Part shown: positions 33,438 to 55,516 of the stretch, one piece after another
How positions within the stretch are numbered: position 1 is the stretch's first letter
How the letters are laid out: each line of letters opens with the position of its first letter
Origin: Rebecca billardiae RCC1528
Lineage: Eukaryota > Protista > Haptophyta
DNA length: 64,000 bases
Assembly: GCA_965240325.2 (NCBI GenBank)
Contig: OZ251225.1
Coordinates: 1,178,001-1,242,000, forward strand
Direction of reading: 5' to 3'
Program-made: the position numbers and the translations under genes
Notes under the pieces: generated by a model
What the model was told of the DNA's origin: nothing
The model's input: the letters and a program-made list of their open reading frames with translations, nothing else
Databases searched by the model: none

Positions 33438-36400
33438 TCATAGCCGCACATCGGCCGGCTCACCGAAGACGGGCAAGACGGCCGCCGCCGGGCCGAGCAA
33501 TGGGCCGCGCGGCGAGGCGGCGCCGAGGCCGTACTCAGACTCGCGCGCCGCGGCGGCCGCCTCCGCGGCGACGACGGCAGCGCCGACCAGCGCGTCGACG
33601 ATGGCGCCGATGTGCGCGAGCGCCTCGGTGTGCCGCGTCGCGCGCTCGCCCGCCGCGCGCGCAAACCGCCAGCGCGCGCCGCGCACACGGTGCTCGGGCG
33701 GGCAGCCCGCGGCGCGCCACGATGCGGCGCGCACGTTGGCGCGCGATCGCTGCAGACGGACCGCGTCTGCAGAGCGCGGCGGCGGCGGCGCGAAGCGGCC
33801 GCGCAGCAGCACGGGTGGCTGCCCCCCCGTCGAGCTGGCCAGCAGCAGCAGGCCGTGGTCGGCCGAGACGGCGAGCCTGTCCAGCTCCGGCCGCGCGCCG
33901 CCGCCCTTGGCGCCCGCCGCGGGCCGCGGCGGCGGCGGCAGCGCGGGCGTGAGGTCCAACGGCCCTTTCACGACGCGCGCGCTCGCGAGCGAGACGACGC
34001 TCAGCTGGTTGGCGCAGAGGATGTACGCGTAGTCCGACGCGGTGTGCGCGAGCGTGCCCCCGAGCGCGAGCGCGGGCGCCGCGCTCGCCGCGCTCGCCGC
34101 CGGCAGCGGCACTCGCGTGCGAAGCGGCGTCGGCCGCACGCTGCCGCCATGCACACTCAGCAGCGCAAGCTCACAAAAGGCGGCGGGGAAGGCACGCGAG
34201 GGCGCGTAGTACGCGAGGACTGCGAGCTCGCGCCCGCCGCCGGTGAGCGCCGCGCCGGCGATCACGCCCGCGCGCGTGCCGAGCACGTAGCTCCGCACCG
34301 AGTGCTCCAGCAGCAGCGCGCCCTCGCCGCCCGCCGCGCGCCGCACCGTCGTAAACTCGGCGCGGCCGTCAGCGCGCACACGCTCCTCGCGGCCGAAGGT
34401 GCTCTCGACCGAGCCGTCCGCCAGGGTGCGCGTGCGCCACGGGGTGCTCGCGCCGAGGCCGAGCGGGTGCAGCCGGTTGGCCTCGTACGCGCGGGAGATG
34501 GCGACGAACTGCCGGCTGCGCTCGGGCGCGCGCACGGGCACGCGCACGCCCTCGGGCGGGAAGAGGAGCGCCGGCGGCGCCGACTCTGCCGGTGTCACCT
34601 CCCTCACCGCCAGCTCGAGTCGAGCGCCGCCGCGCGCCGGCGCAAACCAGCCAAAGGAGGAGAGGTGGAGCGGCGAGTAGGGCCAGAGCCGCACGCCGCC
34701 GCGCGCGTCGAGCGTGACCACCGTCGGCGCGCCCGCCAGGCCGCCCCCGCCGCCGCCCGCCGCCGCGCCGCCCGCCGCCACGCCGCAGAAGAGGACGGCG
34801 GCAGCATGGCCGCCGGAGAGCAGCTCAGCGCTCAGCAGCGACGGCGGCACGGCGGGCGCGGCGCCCGCGGGGAGCAGCCGCGCGTCGGCGCCGTCCGCCT
34901 CGCGGAGCGCGCGCGCGCGCGCGGGCGGCGCGCCCAGCACGACCATCGCCGCGGCGGGCGTGTTCAGCTTCACCGCCAGCCCGCAGCCGAGGCCGGCGAC
35001 CAGCGACGGCTGATGGCCGCCGAGCGTGTGCGTCGGATGGAAGCAGACAGCGCGGGCGCGCACGTCCGTGGACGGCGGCGGCGCGGCGGCGGGCGCGGCG
35101 GCGGCGGCGGAAGCGCCGTCCGCGCCAAGCGCGGGCGCGCCGCTCGTCTCGCCCGACGCCGCCGCGCGCAGCCCGAGCGTGCGCAGCAGGCCGCGCCGGC
35201 GCGCGGACGTGGTGGGCGCGCGGCCGCGCCGCCCGCCCGCCGCCGCCGCGCCCGCCGCCGCCGCCGCCGCCGCCGCCGCCTCCCTCTCCGCCTCCTCCGC
35301 CTCGGCGCGCGCGATCAGCTCGGCCGACTCGAGCTGCGCGGGCGTGACGGCCGCGAGGAGGGCGAGCTCGCTCTGCAGCGCACTCGCCGGCTGCCCGCCG
35401 CCACCCGCCGGCTGCGAGCGCCCGCCCTTGCCCGCACCGCCCGCGGCGGCGGAGGCCGCGGCCGCCGCGCCCGCCGTGCGAGCGCGGGCGTGCGCCGCAC
35501 TCGCCGCCTCTGCCAGCGAGGGCGTCGCATCGAGCTGCGCGGGCAGGGAGGCTGCGGCGGGCTCGGTCGCGGGCGCGCCCGCCTGAGCCCCCGCGACCGC
35601 GGCCGCGCGCGCCGCGCCCGCCTCCAGCACCCGCCGCCCGCCCTCCGCCGAGAGCGCGCCCCCAGGCACCAGTGCCCACGCGCACACAGCTCCGCTCTCA
35701 GCGGCGGTCGCGAGCGCGCGGCCGTCCGCACTCCAGCTTACGCAGCGCAGCGCAGAGGGCGCGGCGGCGGCGTCGCGCGGCGCGGCGCGGCCGCCGCCGC
35801 CTGTCGGCGGGCTCACCCAGCGCACGGTGGGCATCGGCGCCGCCGCCGGCCCCGCCGCCGCCGCCGCCGCCGCCGCCCCGGGCTGCCCGCCCGCGGCCGC
35901 GGCCGCGGCGGCGGGCCCGGCGCCCGCCGCCGTCGGCGCGGCGGGCGGCTGCGGCCAATCGCACGCGAGGATGGCGACGGAGCCGTCGGCGCGTCCGGCG
36001 GCGACGAGCGGCGCGCGCGGCGCGAAGGCGAGCGCGGTGACGCCCACAAGCCCGCCGAGCGCGCCCACGCCCACGCCCTCCTCCGGCCGCAGCTGCCAGC
36101 AGCGCCACCAGGCCAGCTCCAGCTCCGCGTGTCGCGTGACGAGCCGGCCGCGCGGCAGCGGCGGCGTGTCTGCGGCGCCTAGCAGCCGCTCGTGCGCGCC
36201 GTCGGGCGCGTCGGCGTGGGCGGGCTCGGCGTGGGCGTGGGCGAGCGCGCCGGGTGGGGGCGGCCCCGCGCCCAGCTCGAGCTCGTCGTCGTCCTCCCCC
36301 GCCGCCGCCTCGGCGCCGCCCTCCGCAGCCTCCGCCGCGAGCTCATCGCCGGTGCCACCCCACCCGTGGTGCCAGCGGCGGCGCCGCGGGCGCGTGGTTG

Positions 36401-37937
36401 GGAGTTGGTGCGCCATGCGCTGCGAGGGGAGCGCGGCGGCCTCGCGCGCGGCGCGCTGCCTGCGCATCTCCGCGTACGCGTCGCCCAGCCCCTCGGGCGG
36501 CTCGATCCCGTCCGCGCGCCGCGCCGCGCACGCCGCGGCCCCGCAGAGCAAGTCGCGCGCTGCGCGCTCGCTCAGCGCGCGCGTGCGCGCCGCCTCGGCC
36601 GCCGCGTCGGCGGCGAGCTCGTCGGCGAGCTCGGCGAGGAGGGAGGCGGCGGCGCGGTGCACGCCGCGGTCGCCGGCGAGGAGCGCGTCGCCCGCGACGA
36701 GCGAGTCGAGCAGCGCCGCCTCGCGCGCCATCCACGCCTCGAAGCGCGCCGCGCCGCGCTCGACCGCCTCAGCGGCCGCGCGCCGCGCGCCCTCGCGCGC
36801 GCCGTCCGCGCCCGCGCCCGCGCCCGCCGCGTCCGCGTCTGCGTCTCGCGCGCGGGGGGAGGGCCACTGCGCGAGCTGCGCGCGGAGCGCGTCGACGCGC
36901 TCGAGCTGCGCCTCCCGCCCCGCGTCGACGCGCTCCACCAGCGCCGCGAGCGCCACCGGCTGCGCGCCCTCGGCCGCGGCGCCGCTGGGCGCGAGAGCCG
37001 CCAGGCTCGCTCGCAGCTCAAGCGCGCGCGCCGCGTACGCGCGCCGCTCGGCGTTCTGCGCGCGCAGCGCCTGGTGCCGCGCGTGCAGCTTGCGCTTGTG
37101 CGCGCGGCGCTGCGCGCCCAGCCGCAGCTCGACCGAGTCGCTCAGCGGCGCGAGCGCCGACGCGCCCGCGTCCGCATGCCGCAGCAGCAGGCTCACAGGC
37201 GCGCTCGCGGCCGCCTCAATGGCAGCGCGGCCGCGCGCGCGCTCCGAGGCGCGCGCGCGCTCGGCGTCGGCGCGGCTGCTCGCGCTGCCCGCGCTGACGA
37301 GCTTCTGGAGGTCGCCGAGACCCTCGAACCGCTCGGCGAGCGCCGCGGCCGCGCGGCGCTGCGCCTGCACCTCCGCGGGCTCAGCAGCATCCGCGTCCGC
37401 CGCGCCGCCGGGCGGAGGCACCGACTCCGCCGCCGCGCTCGCCGCCGCCCCGAGCGCGAGGAGCGGGTCGGCCGCGGCGGCCGCGCTCGGATCGGCGGGG
37501 GAGAGGGGAGAGGCGGCTACCGCCTTGGCGGAGGGCTGCGCCCGCGGCCGCGCGCGGCCCTCCTCGAACGCGTGCAGCTCGCCCTTGAGCTCGTCGGCGC
37601 GGCGCGCTGCGAGCAGCTGCTCTGCGCGCAACGCGGCCGCGCGCGCCTTTGCCGCCGCCTCGTCGCGCCGGAGCCTCTCCTCGTCGTCGTGCAGGCGCCC
37701 GAGCCGCGCCCGCGCCTCCGCGATCTGCCGCGCCTTCTGCCGCGCCTCCGCTGCCCGCAGCTCCGTCTCGACCGCCTCGAGCTCCGCTCGGCGCGCCGCG
37801 GCCGCGGCCGCGAGCTCGGCCAGCCGCGCAGCCTCGTCATCGGGGGGCTCGGCCGGGCCCGACTCGGACAGCGCGGCCGTGGTGCCCAGCGTGGTCGCCG
37901 ACGCCGCGCCGGGCGAGACCGCGCCTGAGGACGCCAT
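33438..37937 (-). CDS. Large Ala-rich protein with N-terminal coiled coil and WD40-like repeats
   Basis: Open frame of ~1500 aa; VTALAFAP..VAAGRADGSV, CVSWSADGRALATAAESGAVCAW, VCFHP and TLDARGGVRLW. Confidence 0.65.
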   Translation of the reverse strand: MASSGAVSPGAASATTLGTTAALSESGPAEPPDDEAARLAELAAAAAARRAELEAVETELRAAEARQKARQIAEARARLGRLHDDEERLRRDEAAAKARAAALRAEQLLAARRADELKGELHAFEEGRARPRAQPSAKAVAASPLSPADPSAAAAADPLLALGAAASAAAESVPPPGGAADADAAEPAEVQAQRRAAAALAERFEGLGDLQKLVSAGSASSRADAERARASERARGRAAIEAAASAPVSLLLRHADAGASALAPLSDSVELRLGAQRRAHKRKLHARHQALRAQNAERRAYAARALELRASLAALAPSGAAAEGAQPVALAALVERVDAGREAQLERVDALRAQLAQWPSPRARDADADAAGAGAGADGAREGARRAAAEAVERGAARFEAWMAREAALLDSLVAGDALLAGDRGVHRAAASLLAELADELAADAAAEAARTRALSERAARDLLCGAAACAARRADGIEPPEGLGDAYAEMRRQRAAREAAALPSQRMAHQLPTTRPRRRRWHHGWGGTGDELAAEAAEGGAEAAAGEDDDELELGAGPPPPGALAHAHAEPAHADAPDGAHERLLGAADTPPLPRGRLVTRHAELELAWWRCWQLRPEEGVGVGALGGLVGVTALAFAPRAPLVAAGRADGSVAILACDWPQPPAAPTAAGAGPAAAAAAAGGQPGAAAAAAAAGPAAAPMPTVRWVSPPTGGGGRAAPRDAAAAPSALRCVSWSADGRALATAAESGAVCAWALVPGGALSAEGGRRVLEAGAARAAAVAGAQAGAPATEPAAASLPAQLDATPSLAEAASAAHARARTAGAAAAASAAAGGAGKGGRSQPAGGGGQPASALQSELALLAAVTPAQLESAELIARAEAEEAEREAAAAAAAAAGAAAAGGRRGRAPTTSARRRGLLRTLGLRAAASGETSGAPALGADGASAAAAAPAAAPPPSTDVRARAVCFHPTHTLGGHQPSLVAGLGCGLAVKLNTPAAAMVVLGAPPARARALREADGADARLLPAGAAPAVPPSLLSAELLSGGHAAAVLFCGVAAGGAAAGGGGGGLAGAPTVVTLDARGGVRLWPYSPLHLSSFGWFAPARGGARLELAVREVTPAESAPPALLFPPEGVRVPVRAPERSRQFVAISRAYEANRLHPLGLGASTPWRTRTLADGSVESTFGREERVRADGRAEFTTVRRAAGGEGALLLEHSVRSYVLGTRAGVIAGAALTGGGRELAVLAYYAPSRAFPAAFCELALLSVHGGSVRPTPLRTRVPLPAASAASAAPALALGGTLAHTASDYAYILCANQLSVVSLASARVVKGPLDLTPALPPPPRPAAGAKGGGARPELDRLAVSADHGLLLLASSTGGQPPVLLRGRFAPPPPRSADAVRLQRSRANVRAASWRAAGCPPEHRVRGARWRFARAAGERATRHTEALAHIGAIVDALVGAAVVAAEAAAAARESEYGLGAASPRGPLLGPAAAVLPVFGEPADVRL

Positions 37938-38100
37938 GCCTCTACCTCCCCTCCGCAACGGTTGTGCAGGGTGCGGCTGCCATCGTTTTCACCCTGCTGC
38001 TGCAGTGCTGCTGGCTGCTCCAGCATGAGGCCTGTCCGGAGCTTTCGCCCGGACTCATTGGTCAAAGTGGCTGCAGCAAGCACACGTGGCGGCCGTCTTG

Positions 38101-48556: not shown

Positions 48557-49545
48557 GACTGCCAGCTGACATCCGGACCTGCACCATCGCCCTCGCTCGG
48601 GGCACAGCAGGGCCATGCGAGCCGCGCAGCGCAGGTGGATCGCGCTTCAGCAGCTCAAGGCCGCGCTCAAGCTTTACGATCGCGGTGCAGGCTATGCTCT
48701 GCCACCAACGCCGACTTCGTGTCGACGATCGGGCACTGCCGCCGACGAATCAGGAGACCCGCGTCGTCCTACCTGTGTCGTTAAATCATAGAATGAGTCT
48801 GGGAGCTGCTCAGGCCGCTGTGTGCGGTTTGAAGGCGCGCAAACTTGTGGAGCGGGTGACCACATGGGTTGAGCACAATGCGACGTTGCGTGTTGCCGCG
48901 AAACACCACTTCCTCGCCTCTCCGCGCGCGCGCCGCGCGGCTACCGTGACCTCATCTTAACAGGTCACGTGTGGCCGCCCGTGGGGCGAGGGTGGGCGAG
49001 GAGGGGCGGGCGAGGGTGACGCCGCCCCGGGGAACCGCCTTGGCAGGCCGACCGACGCCTCGCAGCCCCCCTCGCGGCACACATGCGCGCACGCCCGCCG
49101 CTCGGAGCGCGCCATCGATTCGAATGGGCGTGCGCGCGAACGACCATGCTCAAACGGCTTCGGCCCGATCTTTCTCCACTGTGGCGGCGCGAAGTGCCGC
49201 GAACGGGGCATCAAAAAAATTCCAGCGCATCCCCACTGGGCGGAAGTGCGGACAGGTTACGGTGACGGCTAAAATCGAATTGTTTACTGTGGGATATTAA
49301 CTTATGCTGTGACAGCAGTCGTGACTCATGTCGGCTAATCATAATAATCGATAATGGTGCCCAGCGAAAGTAGCAGTGGCGATCGATGGCATCGAAGATA
49401 TATGATGGTGATGACGCTGATGAGATGGTGCGCGCATCGTCGCGCACGATGATACGTCGTCGCGGCACACTCGCGCGTCGTGCGCCGTCAGTCGTCAGCA
49501 CTCAGTCAGCAGCGATGACGAGAGTCCGAGCAGTATGGGGGTGTG

Positions 49546-52071
49546 TCAGAAAAAGTACCACAGCGTCCGACCCTCGACGAGCCCGAGCTCAGCCGCGGCA
49601 CGGCGCAGCTCGCAAGGCGCGCCGGCGGACGCGCTCGTGACACTGGCCGACTCGTCCGCGCGCCTGAGCGCGACGCAGACCACCGTCGGCCCGCGGATCT
49701 CGCGCGCGTGCACGACGGGCGCCTTGAACGCGGGCCGGAGCGCGTGGTTGCAGTACGTGGTGCCCACGCGCTTCGGGTCGATGTCGGCGAGCGCGACGAT
49801 GCGCGCGCGCGCCTCGGCGGACAGCGCGCTCACAAAGTGCTTGCCGTCGCGCCCCGCGCCCCACACGGTGAACGTGCGCCACTCCGGCAGCTCGAGCACG
49901 CGCCGCTCGAACGCCGCGACGCGCACGGCGAGGAGGCAGCGGCGCGAGACGGTGGAGGTCATCGACGAGGCCGTCCAGCGGTACAGCAGCACAGGCTCGG
50001 AGGGCGAGCCGACGCGGAGCAGCGGCGGGTCGGCCGCGAGCGCGCGCTCGAGCCGGGCGAGCCACGCCGCGCCGCCGCCGCCCTCGGGCGCGGCGCCGGC
50101 GTCATCCTCCTCCGCCGCCGCCGCCGCCGCCCCCTGCGCGGCTCCCGCGCCGTCCGGCGCGGGCGGCGCGGCGCGCAGCAGGTGCCGATAACTGTCGAGC
50201 TGCTTATGCATGAAGTCGAGGTCCTCTGCGGGCGCGCACAGGAAGCCGCCGCACCGCTCGAACGTGGCGCGGGCCATGCACCACGTGGGCATCTGCACGG
50301 TGGTCTCGCGGAACTGCTGCAGCCACAGCTCGAGCGGCGGGAGGCCGTTCGCCCACGTCTCATAGTGCGCGGTCGCGCCGTCCGGCAGCCGGCGCCACGC
50401 GCCGCCGACGATGGCGCGCGGGTGCGCGGCGAGGGCGGACACCTGCGCGTGGATGCGCGTTGGCAGCATGATGTCGTCGGCGTCGAGAAAGAGAAGGACG
50501 GCGCCGCTCGACTGGCGCACCGCCGCGTTCTTCGCGAAGCCGATCCCGCCCGCCGACGCCGACGCGTCCCCGCCCCACCGACTCCCCGAGACGACGGCGG
50601 CCACGCCCGCGCGCCGCAGCCGCCCCGCCCAGTGTCGCACGGCCGCGTCGGTGCCGTCGTCTGACGCGTCGTCGAAGATGCTCACCTCGAGGGGGCCTGG
50701 GTAGGTCTGCGCGAGGACGGAGGCGAGGCACTCGTCCAGCGTGCCCAGCGCATTGTGCGCCGGCACGATCACGCTCACGCGCGGCAGCTCCGTCCCATGC
50801 CCCAGCGCCGCGTGGGGCGCGCCGTGCGCCGACAGCACGCCGCGCGCCGACGGGCGGGTCGGCCGCAGCTCTGCAGCGGCCGCGAGCTGCGCGACCTCGT
50901 CGGCGAGCGCCTGTGCGCTGCGGAGTGGGCGGCGCTTCGGCGGGGGCTCGAGCAGCTCGAGGTCCGAGCCAGCTGAGCCGCGTGCCCGCTGCTTCGCACC
51001 GCTCGCCTCGCCTGCCGCGGTGGCAGCCGCAGCCGGCGCGGGTGCAAGCGCGGGCGCTGTGGCCTCGGGCGCCTCCTCCGCCGCCGTCGCCAATTCCGCC
51101 TCCGCCTCGCCCAGGCCGAGCAGCCGGAGCGCGCGGCCGCCGTGGTCCGCGAAGGCGCGCTCGCTCACGCGCGCCATCCCGTTGTACATCACGCGCGGCA
51201 CGGCCGAGCAGTTCGCCGTGCCCGAGTGCACGAGCCACGGGTGCAGCAGCACGGCATCGCCGATGGCACCGCACACCTGGTGCACGCGCGCGCGCGCGGA
51301 GCTGCCGCCGCCGCTGCCCTCCAGCTCGTAGTCGAGGCTGAGCGCGCCGACGCGGCGGCGTGCGGCGGCCTCACGTGACGACCAGCCGTTCAGCTCCTGG
51401 TGGGTCACGCCGCCCTCTCCCGCCGCGCGCAGCGCCGCGTACACCCAGCGGTGGCTGCCGCGAATCAGCGCGGTGCCGCCGCCGCCGGGCTCGCACGCCG
51501 AGCCGAGCACAAGGAGCACGCAGCCCTGGTAGCGGTGGCCGGCGAGGGTACGCCGCTCGTCGGTGCTGAAGCCCGGGCCGATGTCCACGTGCCATCCTCG
51601 CCAGCGCTGCCCGCGCCGGTTCACCGGCGACCACGCCGGCGCGCCTGCGTCCTCCGGGAAGACGATAGGCGCGTACCAGTGCCGCACAGGGATGCGCCCG
51701 CCGCCGGCCGGCGGGCCCGAGTTGATGGGCAGCTCCCAGTCGCCCGGCCCGAGGAGGGCGTCCAGCGCGGCAGTGAGCGGCGGCGAGCTCACGAGGGCGC
51801 GCCACGCCGCCGTGTCGCCCGGCGGCGTCACCTCCACCACGCGGCGCGTGCTCGCTCGCGGCCACGAGGCCGGCCGGGCGAGCTCGATCGGCTCCGTGCC
51901 GACCTCGCCGCTCTCCGGCGGGATGGAGGGCGCGGCGATCTCGCGCTCGAGCTGCTCGCGCAGCGCATCCATCGTCTCGCGGCCCACCGCGCCTCTCACG
52001 TACACGAAGCCTTCGCGCGCGAATGCTTCTCTCACGGCCTCCGCATGGCGCTTGACGGATGCGGACTCCAT
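49546..52071 (-). CDS. Fusion of a PhyH-like 2OG-Fe(II) dioxygenase and a B3GNTL1/QTGAL-like GT2 glycosyltransferase
   Basis: N-half: FAREGFVYVRGAV, WHVD, GGTALIRGSH, GDAVLLHPWLVHSG..R. C-half: VSVIVPAHNA..LDECL, GIGFAKNAAVRQSSG, FLDADDIM, TVQMPTW, EDL, FTVWGAGRDGK, DIDPKRV and LGLVEG..YF. One uninterrupted frame. Confidence 0.88.
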   Translation of the reverse strand: MESASVKRHAEAVREAFAREGFVYVRGAVGRETMDALREQLEREIAAPSIPPESGEVGTEPIELARPASWPRASTRRVVEVTPPGDTAAWRALVSSPPLTAALDALLGPGDWELPINSGPPAGGGRIPVRHWYAPIVFPEDAGAPAWSPVNRRGQRWRGWHVDIGPGFSTDERRTLAGHRYQGCVLLVLGSACEPGGGGTALIRGSHRWVYAALRAAGEGGVTHQELNGWSSREAAARRRVGALSLDYELEGSGGGSSARARVHQVCGAIGDAVLLHPWLVHSGTANCSAVPRVMYNGMARVSERAFADHGGRALRLLGLGEAEAELATAAEEAPEATAPALAPAPAAAATAAGEASGAKQRARGSAGSDLELLEPPPKRRPLRSAQALADEVAQLAAAAELRPTRPSARGVLSAHGAPHAALGHGTELPRVSVIVPAHNALGTLDECLASVLAQTYPGPLEVSIFDDASDDGTDAAVRHWAGRLRRAGVAAVVSGSRWGGDASASAGGIGFAKNAAVRQSSGAVLLFLDADDIMLPTRIHAQVSALAAHPRAIVGGAWRRLPDGATAHYETWANGLPPLELWLQQFRETTVQMPTWCMARATFERCGGFLCAPAEDLDFMHKQLDSYRHLLRAAPPAPDGAGAAQGAAAAAAEEDDAGAAPEGGGGAAWLARLERALAADPPLLRVGSPSEPVLLYRWTASSMTSTVSRRCLLAVRVAAFERRVLELPEWRTFTVWGAGRDGKHFVSALSAEARARIVALADIDPKRVGTTYCNHALRPAFKAPVVHAREIRGPTVVCVALRRADESASVTSASAGAPCELRRAAAELGLVEGRTLWYFF

Positions 52072-52165
52072 CCTGCCACTTTGGACTCTGGCACTTTGCA
52101 CGACGGAGTCCGGGAGCGGAGCCACGGTGCCCCTCGGTGTGGCAACTCGGACTCGCCGTCCAACG

Positions 52166-53328
52166 ATGCCGGTGAGCGCCGCGATCGACTCGACATCGGC
52201 GGCGCTGGGCGCGCTCCTCGCGACGCTCGCGCTCTATCCGCTCGATGTGGCGAAGACGCGCATCCAAGCCGAGCCGGGGACCTCCCGCGAGCGCGGCACC
52301 CTGGCCATGTGCGCGCGCATCGCGCGAGAGGACGGGCCGCTCGCGCTGCTTGTGGGCGTGACGCCCAAGGCGGTGTCCACCGTGTTGTCCAACTTTGCGT
52401 TCTTCTACTTCCTCGCGGCGCTGAAGCGCGCGTACTCGCGGGTCGGCCGTCCGCCGGGTACCGCCGCCAGTCTGGCCATGGGCTCGCTCGCGGGTGCGCT
52501 CAACATGTCGGTCACGCTGCCAACCGAGACCGTCACGACACGGCTGCAGGCGGCGAGCGCGGCGAATCAGGAGGGGCTGTTCTCGAGCATGGCGAACATT
52601 TACGACGAAGAGGGCATTCTCGGGTGCGTTGCCCCACGCCGCGCGCGTCGCGCGCGGCCGCGTCGTGGCCCGCCAGCCTCCCGCCTCTCACCTCGCGTCC
52701 GCCGCCACACGCGTTGCGCCCTCGGACGATCCCGCGGGGTGCCCACAGGTTCTGGCGGGGCTATTTTGCATCGCTGATCCTGGTGATCAATCCGGCGATC
52801 CATATGACGGTGTTCGATGCGCTCAAGGCGCGCGTGCTGCGCGCCGCCAGCGCGCTGCAGGGCCGGCCGGTGCGCGCGCTCACCGCGGCGCAGGCGTTCC
52901 TCCTGGGCGCCCTCTCCAAGGCGCTGGCCACCGTACTCACTTACCCACTTATCCGGGTCAAGGTGCTGCAGCAGGCGGGGAAGCGGCGCGCGGAGGCTGG
53001 CGCCAAGCCTGGCGAGCCCGAGGGCGCCGGCGCCACGCGAGACGCCGCTCGCCCGCCGGCGCAGCAGCCGGCTGGCACTGCGGAGCTGCTGGCTGCCATC
53101 TGGCGCGCCGAGGGCGCGCGGGGGCTGTACAAGGGGTGCGACGCACAGCTGCTGACGACCGTGCTCAAGAGCGGGCTTCTGCTCATGAGCAAGGAGCAGG
53201 TGCTCCGCCTGACGATACGGCTGCTGCGTGGTGGCGCTCGTGGGCGCGCTGGCTCTGCTGCGCAAGCGCTAGTCCCCCGATCCGCGACGACAGCAGCAGC
53301 GACGGCGGCAGGGCTTAGGGCAGGCTAG
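52166..53328 (+). CDS. Mitochondrial-carrier-family protein of peroxisomal PMP34/SLC25A17/ANT1 type; intron at 52624-52748
   Basis: Three Px[DE]xx[KR]-like motifs (YPLDVAKTRIQ, LPTETVTTRLQ, TYPLIRVKV); LVINPAI; AFLLGALSKALATVLTYP. Confidence 0.85.
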
Positions 53329-55516
53329 AGCCGCTGAGCCGGAGTCTGCGGCCTGGCAGCCCTGAGGTGAGTTGCCCACCGGGCCTGCTGTGGACCGGCG
53401 TGGGGCAAGATGCGTGACGAGGTCACCATTCGCCATGCCATGCTGTTGCCGATGCATGCCGCCACCGAGTGCTAAGTGTGCCATGCCGCCGAATGGGCAT
53501 GCCATGCGGCGGGACATCGGACTGCCACAAGGCACAATTGAAAATGCGGTTAATGTCGTCGTCAATGACAATGGGATGAAGCGGGCCGCCGGGCCGGGAT
53601 CGGCGTGATTCGGCGTCGGCCGCCGGCTGAATAGACAGAATAATGGCCCGCGGTGCAGGGCGGAGCGCGCAGCGTGGAGCCCGCACCAGCGGGCCCGAAG
53701 TCCGAACCACGTTTCATTGAAAAGATCTTTGATCATCAAGAAAAAAGGGACGGGGGGCGGCGGAAAAAAAGGGACGGGGGGGCTCCGGTCACTGTCCGGG
53801 ACGTCCAGCAGGGGTGCATTCAGACTCTCTGGGGGGGTCTGGGGGGGGCTCCCCCCAGCCGATCGAAGGACCAAATACGCCTCAATAAGGCCCCAACTCG
53901 CCAGAATTCGCATAGCAGACCGTGTTCGCTGGTGTTGGCTGAGGGCTGCATCGTGCGGCGTCGGCTCTGCGCCGGGCGGCCATGACGCATTACACACAGC
54001 CCCGATATCGGCGCCTCCCTCGCGAGTCAAGACGTAGCGCAGTGCAGGATCGAGCAACGCATTGACCGCTGCGGCGCACCGCGCAGGCCACGCCGCACCT
54101 CAGCACTCGCGAACAAGCTCTGAGCCAGCCAGCTGTGGCAGTCCTCTGAGGAGCTGCAGCCAAGCACGAGCTCGTGCGCATACCCGTGGCACCACGAGCT
54201 GACGGCGCGGCCCGGGGCGCGAGCAGCTAGAAGCCGACAAGCTCATGCGCACGCCCGCACCGCCGCGAGGTGTGGCCGCCGGCGCGAGCAGCTCGACGCG
54301 GATAGCGCGCAGCTTGCTCGAGTCGACGAGCAGCTTCTCGCCCATCGGTGACTCTCAGTGCACGAAGGTGCACCCGGGGCGCGAGCGCGACAGGGTGCCG
54401 CGGCCAACCAGCGGATGCGCCCGGATCAAGGCCTCCAAGGCGTCTCGTCTCCTCGCCCGCTCGGCGGAGCTCCATCGTGCGAGAGACCGGTCCGGGAGCC
54501 CCCAAAAAAGTTCAGCACGATGGAGTCCTCAGTGTTCGACTGTGACGACGCGTTCAAGGACAAAGAAACATACGAAATCGTCTGCGGCTTCGGTTTTGAA
54601 CCTGCGGCTTCGTCCGCCGCCCCGGAGATCTTTCGATTGGTACCCTCATCGCTCCCTGGCTCCCAGGGGTTCGTCTAAATGCACCCCCCCCATAGGGTCA
54701 GTGGACGTCCCTGACTGTGGCTGGAGCCGGGGGCGATTTTTAGGGCTGGCGGAGACCGAGTTTCGAGTTTTTGAGATCGCATAGCAGAGAGGTCTATTAG
54801 GCCGAAAAAGAGCGCGCCCAGCTGATTCCATAAGTAATCGATGGACGGGACGTGAGCCTGGCCGTGACTTTAGTGTAACGGTTCGTTACGAGCGAATCGT
54901 ACTCGTCTTCCCGGATCGCGTGACGTCCGGACTGGGCCACATCCGGATCGTCGGACGGGTGAGTGGTGACGTGCCCCGGCAGTCGGCACGATGGGCGATG
55001 GCGGATATGCGGGACGGCGCCTGCACGTGCCTCCGGACCCGCCTCCCGCTTGCTGCTCACGCAGTCAGCTGCGACCGTGGCGCATGATCGCAGAAGCAGT
55101 GCCGGCAGTACGGCCTGCATCAGCTAGTGCCGCGCCGTCGTGGCGCGCGCGGTACGGTTGCGCGTTTGCAGCGCTCGCCGCTCGGCGACGGCACGCGCGT
55201 GCGGCTCAGGTGTGTCAAATGCGGTCTCGTCGGCGCGCTTTCGCCTGCCACCTCGTGCACCCGTGCCGCCAGTTTCATCGTCTTCATGAGGACTGCTGCT
55301 GCTGTCGCCATCCGCTCTCCATCACCCCGAGTCGCCGGTCGCGCGGGCGCGCGCCGGTAGGCACTAGGTAGGCAGGGCGTACGGTCACTCACCCGTGCAA
55401 CGGGTCAAGTGGCCAGAGTACGTCTGGTCGTTGGCTGGCACGGGCCGCAGCGCTAAAGCACCCTGCTGTCACACCCGACTCCTTCAGTACTCCGAGCTCC
55501 GCGGCACGACTCACTC

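Follow-up and report, generated by a model that had tools for sequence, protein, structure and literature searches.

Why would an alga join an oxygenase to a glycosyltransferase whose family is known for modifying RNA? The question is raised by a minus-strand gene in a 64,000-nucleotide (nt) stretch of the haptophyte Rebecca billardiae RCC1528 (contig OZ251225.1, positions 1,178,001 to 1,242,000; hereafter the window, with a GC content of ~68%). It encodes an N-terminal dioxygenase of the PhyH type, dependent on Fe(II) and 2-oxoglutarate (2OG), followed in the same polypeptide by a family 2 glycosyltransferase (GT2) of the B3GNTL1 family, also called QTGAL. The product is predicted to be a real, conserved and hitherto undescribed bifunctional enzyme; we tentatively favour, at rather less than even chances, one enzyme working on a substrate borne by a nucleic acid, most likely queuosine (Q) or a related tRNA base. 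The kinds of domain that are joined are known ones and pairs of oxygenase and glycosyltransferase (GT) have precedents (LH3, L230 and JBP plus JGT), although the literature searched held no prior description of the PhyH-GT architecture, in agreement with the original prediction that it was undescribed.

The gene occupies a single uninterrupted frame (49546..52125, minus strand) of 859 amino acids counted from a GTG at 52125. The first ATG, at 52071, gives a protein of 841 amino acids (841 codons, stop codon at 49546-49548) and was taken as the start because the N-termini of orthologues P0059 and P0004 line up there; no intron is needed, since homology extends through the entire frame. One intron-free frame of ~841 amino acids had been predicted, and the open reading frame (ORF) listing, the orthologue N-termini and the homology along the frame all bear this out. 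A Pfam scan placed PhyH (PF05721) at residues 18-294 (30.2 bits, above the cut-off of 22) and Glycos_transf_2 (PF00535) at residues 433-601 (E 1.8e-20). The predicted dioxygenase motifs, a WHVD HxD pair, a distal histidine in WLVHSG and an arginine downstream, were located at GWHVDIGPG (residues 159-167), LHPWLVHSG (276-284) and PRVMYNGM (292-299, Arg293). The Ala-rich linker with its PPKRR was likewise found as described, with LLEPPPKRR at residues 373-381, and is followed in the GT half by FLDADD (528-533), FTVWGAGRDG (734-743), DIDPKRVG (763-770) and LGLVEG (829-834). The features are as follows:

49546..52071, minus strand: whole coding sequence; open frame with an N-terminus that agrees with the orthologues
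51112..52071, minus strand: PhyH-type 2OG/Fe(II) dioxygenase domain, residues 1-320 (PF05721; AlphaFold2 (AF2) model; structural neighbours in the PhyH clan)
51571..51597, minus strand: GWHVDIGPG with the HxD iron ligands H161 and D163, invariant in 16 fusion proteins
51175..51246, minus strand: LHPWLVHSG...PRVMYNGM with the putative distal iron ligand H282 and putative 2OG-binding R293 (H277, H282 and R293 invariant; residue roles follow the PhyH pattern)
50800..51111, minus strand: Ala-rich acidic linker, residues 321-424, carrying LLEPPPKRR at 50929-50955
50152..50799, minus strand: GT-A (GT2) catalytic core, residues 425-640 (PF00535), with FLDADD (DxD-type) at 50473-50490 and AEDLD at 50215-50229
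50032..50163, minus strand: low-complexity insert, rich in Ala and Gly, that separates core and C-terminal domain; its length varies among relatives and its predicted local distance difference test score (pLDDT) is <50 at residues 231-245 of the GT-half model
49549..50031, minus strand: B3GNTL1-family C-terminal alpha/beta domain, residues 681-841, with LLYRW, FTVWGAGRDG, DIDPKRVG, VVCVAL and LGLVEG

That separate genes had been joined by mis-assembly or read-through, or that the frame is a pseudogene, is very unlikely indeed. Logan contig L001, genomic DNA from another strain, aligns collinearly and gap-free with window positions 49264-53439 (4,176 bp, 99.64% identity), and local mis-assembly is ruled out on that account; L001 had also been considered as a transcript, which was rejected given that it is collinear genomic DNA. 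Searches of sequencing runs for the source organism listed no RNA run (one run of unknown kind held 5% of the words), which leaves some room for an artefact, but many assemblies and two MMETSP transcripts carry the same fusion in a single ORF; its catalytic residues are invariant and substitutions are mostly synonymous. The two strains differ at 15 positions in the ORF, nine synonymous and six non-synonymous, for a crude ratio of non-synonymous to synonymous rates (dN/dS) of ~0.2 from small numbers. As a separate observation, the 1.65 kb of flanking sequence (carrier gene and spacers) showed no difference, all 15 being confined to the 2.5-kb fusion ORF, a distribution expected by chance in ~5 of 10,000 cases if differences were evenly spread.

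A survey for the fusion showed that it recurs in MMETSP transcripts and in many independent assemblies. PhyH and GT2 domains occur together in P0059, P0004, P0242, P0276 and P0225, and the junction is still visible in the truncated calls P0064, P0018, P0013 and P0003. In transcripts P0001 and P0165, one frame runs from the last dioxygenase strands through the linker into the GT, and this is transcript-level support for the fusion in a related haptophyte. The LLEPPPKRR motif is present in P0059 and P0001 as well as in the window protein and is kept in haptophyte linkers; it looks like a nuclear localisation signal, by which the enzyme may be targeted to the nucleus. The fusion also extends to green algae. 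Fifteen contigs, the longest of 1.74 Mb, carry P0170 as an uninterrupted ORF of 3,021 nt; its neighbouring genes cluster with Micromonas proteins, Micromonas-like Tara scaffolds carry the fusion, and the P0237 cluster includes a gene model of 974 amino acids from Prasinoderma coloniale. On these sequences the fusion is common to haptophytes and the green lineage (Micromonas-like algae and Prasinoderma) and is not a one-off. The automatic JGI name of one member, P0233, is 'glycosyltransferase .../ectoine hydroxylase-related'.

Some of these proteins have Myb domains within the dioxygenase half (P0060-P0063, P0233, P0235, P0237, P0240 and P0244), although the window protein itself has none. Full alignment of P0060-P0063 placed two repeats in a loop between 'VVFPE' and 'W.PVNRR', ~20 residues ahead of the HxD motif. 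Their best match in the PDB was the c-Myb R2R3-DNA complex 1h88 (E 5e-11), followed by SNAPc4 and CEF1, and the insert is genuine because the P0170 ORF is uninterrupted on all 15 contigs. Repeats of the c-Myb type in the green-algal dioxygenases would fit a nucleic-acid setting. Elsewhere among the metagenomic calls, ankyrin repeats precede Myb-PhyH-GT in P0291 (1444 amino acids) and the GT alone in P0341 (867 amino acids), and other long 'fusions' among the matches involve NOPCHAP1, UVSSA, a kinase or phosphatase, or ankyrin; any of these may be merged gene calls. On one Micromonas-like Tara scaffold (L002:9132-11722), genes for a CYTH (thiamine-triphosphatase-like) protein and a SpoU-type RNA methyltransferase lie directly downstream of the Myb-PhyH-GT gene.

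What chemistry might the N-terminal half perform? In an alignment of 16 fusion proteins H161, D163, H282 and R293 are invariant, and the distal histidine and the arginine are 11 residues apart, matching the PhyH pattern. The dioxygenase is, to judge by these active-site signatures, a catalytically intact PhyH-type Fe(II)/2OG enzyme. Its AF2 model had a pLDDT of 87.7 and a predicted template modelling score (pTM) of 0.89, and the 50 structural neighbours listed by Foldseek included SnoN/SnoK, KanJ, MysH, EvdO1/AviO1, FtmOx1, PHYH and EctD (E ~1e-8; template modelling (TM) scores of 0.5-0.6; 11-17% identity). These are small-molecule enzymes of the PhyH clan, several of which act on sugar moieties. 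The domain resembles PHYH, EctD, KanJ, SnoK/SnoN, EvdO1/AviO1 and MysH in its double-stranded beta-helix fold, its HxD...H triad and the placing of an arginine 11 residues after the distal histidine; it differs in being joined to a GT and, in the green-algal proteins, interrupted by Myb repeats, and its identity to them is only 11-17%. The sole type of match in the ESM Atlas was a generic bacterial PhyH cluster (TM 0.85). TET/JBP, AlkB, prolyl 4-hydroxylase (P4H) and JmjC enzymes were absent from the 50 listed structural matches and Pfam gave no TET/JBP match; a TET/JBP-like oxygenase was rejected on these grounds. Scans of viral contigs and of prokaryotic species genomes for the signature motifs GWHVDIGPG and WYxPxxFPE gave no match.

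The original prediction held that the C-terminal half is collinear along its whole length with human B3GNTL1; the comparison was made here with proteins of pig, cetacean, fish and nematode in place of the human one. An exhaustive phmmer search with residues 416-841 gave 242 clusters at E <= 1e-30, and the matches named B3GNTL1 included P0286 (Sus scrofa, so named in UniRef, E 3.9e-48) and P0371 (cetacean, E 1.2e-37). This search was used in place of a word-indexed one, run with an alignment that included three bacterial rows, which listed ~1,000 bacterial proteins of 329 amino acids and no animal protein. By BLASTP, the GT-A core (GT-half residues 16-195) was 44% identical to cetacean B3GNTL1 P0376 (E 3e-46; 43-44% for the mammalian B3GNTL1 proteins), and the C-terminal part (GT-half residues 274-387) was 34% identical to B3GNTL1 isoform P0378 (E 1e-16) over a region that spans the FT[IV]W.AG and D.D motifs. 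The cetacean and pig entries are in part aberrant predicted isoforms, and among those listed no single one could be aligned cleanly over its full length; collinearity was therefore seen in two pieces, core and C-terminal part, and with isoform X1 P0380.

Structure and conservation agree with this. Over its residues 13-426 the model of the GT half (pLDDT 86.4) superposes on ESM Atlas clusters of chordate B3GNTL1 (TM 0.81-0.83 by target), and equally well on bacterial proteins of ~335 amino acids in the same resource. Forty-five columns are at least 85% conserved among 93 family members outside the protein's own clade, and the window protein matches 44 of them, the exception being a K to R change; it also carries D-x-DD and E-D, which are invariant (100%) across the family. 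The GT-A fold was matched at Z ~22, and the PDB held no solved structure of the B3GNTL1 type, giving generic GT-A core matches and nothing specific for the C-terminal domain. With animal B3GNTL1/QTGAL, then, the window GT has in common a GT2 core of the GT-A fold with D-x-DD and E-D, a C-terminal domain with W-x-AG-x-x-G, D-x-D-x-x-K and L-x-L-x-EG, and a predicted structure that superposes over its whole length; its membership of the family, in donor site and special C-terminal domain alike, is well supported. In the characterised activity of this family of GTs, uridine diphosphate (UDP)-galactose is the donor and Q34 in tRNA-Tyr accepts the galactose at its homoallylic hydroxyl, a step that can precede splicing (bioRxiv 10.64898/2026.06.28.735034). 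Galactosylation of Q34 is the only activity characterised in the B3GNTL1 family.

Bacterial relatives show a different setting. In Gaiellaceae, the genes for homologues of 329 amino acids that comprise the GT and the C-terminal domain share 4 nt with the gene upstream, which encodes an EamA-type transporter (L007:7132-8990 and L008:7108-8990), and no tgt or que gene lies beside them, a single-lineage result that is not decisive. Because these members adjoin a transporter gene and not tgt/que, specificity for queuosine need not hold for the whole family. The eukaryotic queuine transporter SLC35F2 belongs to the EamA transporter superfamily, a link that may be coincidence. The same gene pair bears on a rather unlikely alternative, in which the fusion makes or tailors a glycosylated metabolite, its dioxygenase working on the sugar or the aglycone in the way of KanJ, SnoK/SnoN, EvdO/AviO or MysH. 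Translational coupling of bacterial GT homologues to a metabolite transporter would suit this, as would the 'ectoine hydroxylase-related' name for the N-terminal half of P0233 and the fact that small-molecule enzymes, several active on sugar moieties, make up all the best structural matches to the dioxygenase; those matches are distant, however, and speak for the PhyH fold only. A DNA-binding Myb insert and a linker resembling a nuclear localisation signal are hard to account for in small-molecule metabolism, and the characterised member of the GT family acts on tRNA.

Family membership is one matter and orthology another. It had been proposed that the GT is like QTGAL (B3GNTL1); its grouping with that protein held at the level of the family, and orthology with the animal enzyme did not. 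Trees of the GT regions, one quick (n=112) and one careful (n=66), agreed with each other and were read as unrooted splits only, their root resting on a long bacterial branch. All dioxygenase-bearing proteins form one clade with support of 100/99. Mammalian P0380, fish P0310 (Menidia), nematode P0322 and P0316 from Alphamonas are set apart by a branch supported at 92/88, and grouped with them is P0345, a protein of 614 amino acids in which a faint HD domain ('HDVCDH', Pfam E 0.044) precedes the GT. P0345 is encoded by a 1,845-nt gene (L005:2001-3845) in Logan sample ERR14847151, which also encodes P0058, a 99%-identical copy of the window gene. With four of four animal B3GNTL1 queries P0345 outscored the window GT (for example 265 versus 200 bits with P0324), and its C-terminal domain is 46.7% identical to the mammalian protein against 34.2% for the window GT. 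Two B3GNTL1-family paralogues are therefore predicted in this organism, the PhyH-fused one being the more divergent. The contrast with animal QTGAL is threefold: the window protein sits in a different clade, it has an N-terminal dioxygenase that the animal proteins lack, and a near-identical strain holds a second paralogue, the HD-GT protein, that is nearer to the animal enzyme. Because P0345 is the closer of the two, the acceptor specificity of the PhyH-fused GT may have changed. The fusion clade is old, paralogous and defined by the PhyH-GT fusion.

Might the shared substrate be a base in DNA? An enzyme that oxidises and glycosylates such a base as in the making of base J (JBP plus JGT), guided by the Myb repeats in green algae and sent to the nucleus by PPKRR in haptophytes, is unlikely. 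Its attraction lies in the authentic c-Myb R2R3-type DNA-binding repeats ahead of HxD in the green-algal orthologues, and in the LLEPPPKRR of the haptophyte linkers. The pathways of base J (JBP1/2 plus JGT) and of phage glucosyl-hydroxymethylcytosine (glc-hmC) also combine an oxidative step with glycosyl transfer on one target, and the Myb repeats of the green-algal orthologues would be a putative counterpart of the DNA-binding module that JBP1 has on its oxygenase. The oxygenase here is nevertheless of the PhyH clan, neither TET/JBP nor AlkB; the GT belongs to a different family from those of base J and glc-hmC, one known for RNA only; both predicted activities lie in one polypeptide; and the window protein has no Myb domain. 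The likeness to base J and glc-hmC drawn in the original prediction is accordingly weak, the dioxygenase being of the PhyH clan. A nuclear signal does not separate DNA from tRNA, given that tRNA-Tyr can gain Q and have it glycosylated before splicing (bioRxiv 10.64898/2026.06.28.735034), early in its biogenesis.

A protein target is distinctly unlikely. In this case the dioxygenase would hydroxylate a nuclear or cytosolic protein at one residue and the GT would glycosylate the hydroxyl so formed, as by collagen LH3/PLOD, mimivirus L230 or the Skp1 pathway. Fusions of hydroxylase and glycosyltransferase that modify proteins are established (LH3 and L230), and domains of the Myb/SANT type can also bind histone tails; the LH3/ColGalT1 complex 8zgc was among the generic GT-A fold matches (Z 14.4). 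Like LH3/PLOD and L230, the window protein joins a 2OG dioxygenase and a GT-A glycosyltransferase in one polypeptide. The order of the domains is, however, opposite to that in LH3, and the oxygenase is of the PhyH clan and not a P4H, lysyl-hydroxylase or JmjC enzyme; an LH3-like reading was rejected, the oxygenase being N-terminal and PhyH-like where that of LH3 is a C-terminal lysyl-hydroxylase (P4H-like). The GT keeps 44 of the 45 conserved columns of an RNA-glycosyltransferase family together with its special C-terminal domain, and the context is not collagen-like.

We return to the reading favoured here, a bifunctional enzyme acting on queuosine or a related tRNA base. Both halves would act successively on one shared substrate, which we infer because algae that are only very distantly related have kept the fusion with both catalytic modules intact. 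A UDP-sugar would supply the sugar that the GT transfers, and the dioxygenase would oxidise once, either beforehand, to create the hydroxyl that accepts the sugar, or after transfer, to modify the sugar or the cyclopentene ring. A queuosine-type base in tRNA is preferred because Q34 of tRNA-Tyr is the acceptor in the only activity characterised for the GT family. The original prediction had the enzyme hydroxylate and then glycosylate. Because the structural neighbours of the dioxygenase (SnoK/SnoN, KanJ, EvdO1/AviO1, MysH and PHYH) are oxygenases that act on small molecules or tailor sugars, and not TET/JBP or AlkB enzymes, this order is not favoured over its reverse; "glycosylate, then oxidise" would be as plausible.

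Several observations weigh against a queuosine-like substrate. Queuosine already bears hydroxyls, so a hydroxylase is unneeded for making an acceptor. Net charge and pI, calculated for each domain as an indicator of nucleic-acid binding, were inconsistent among orthologues and not consistently basic. We know of no PhyH-clan enzyme that acts on nucleic acids, and those nearest in structure act on small molecules. To these are added the lack of tgt/que genes beside the bacterial GT homologues, the position of the window GT, which by phylogeny is not the QTGAL orthologue, and the run searches that listed no RNA run for the source organism.

A new hypermodified nucleoside in abundant marine phytoplankton, either an oxidised glycosyl-queuosine in tRNA or, in the Myb-bearing green algae, a site-specific glycosylated DNA base, is conceivable though doubtful, and it would be detectable as a glycosylated and oxidised nucleoside in algae. 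If present, it would represent a second, independent route of oxidation plus glycosylation in nucleic acids, alongside those to base J and phage glc-hmC, with an oxygenase of the PhyH clan and a transferase of the QTGAL family working as one machine. PhyH-type oxygenases would be extended into nucleic-acid chemistry were the substrate a nucleic acid, and the Myb repeats of the green-algal oxygenase raise the possibility of site-directed modification. Sugar-bearing queuosines have been studied almost solely in animals, and their enzymes were identified recently. In algae the QTGAL transferase family has diversified, with at least two fused forms (PhyH-GT and HD-GT) within one organism; the PhyH form, being conserved in haptophytes, Micromonas and Prasinoderma, is old and widespread in ecologically important phytoplankton.

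Two further features of the window were recorded. A gene for a mitochondrial carrier (Mito_carr, 52100-53330, plus strand) is divergent from the fusion gene across a very short spacer; it was called as two pieces on L001 and probably contains an intron. Positions 34001-38000 are extremely GC-rich, at 0.81-0.82 compared with ~0.68 elsewhere in the window.

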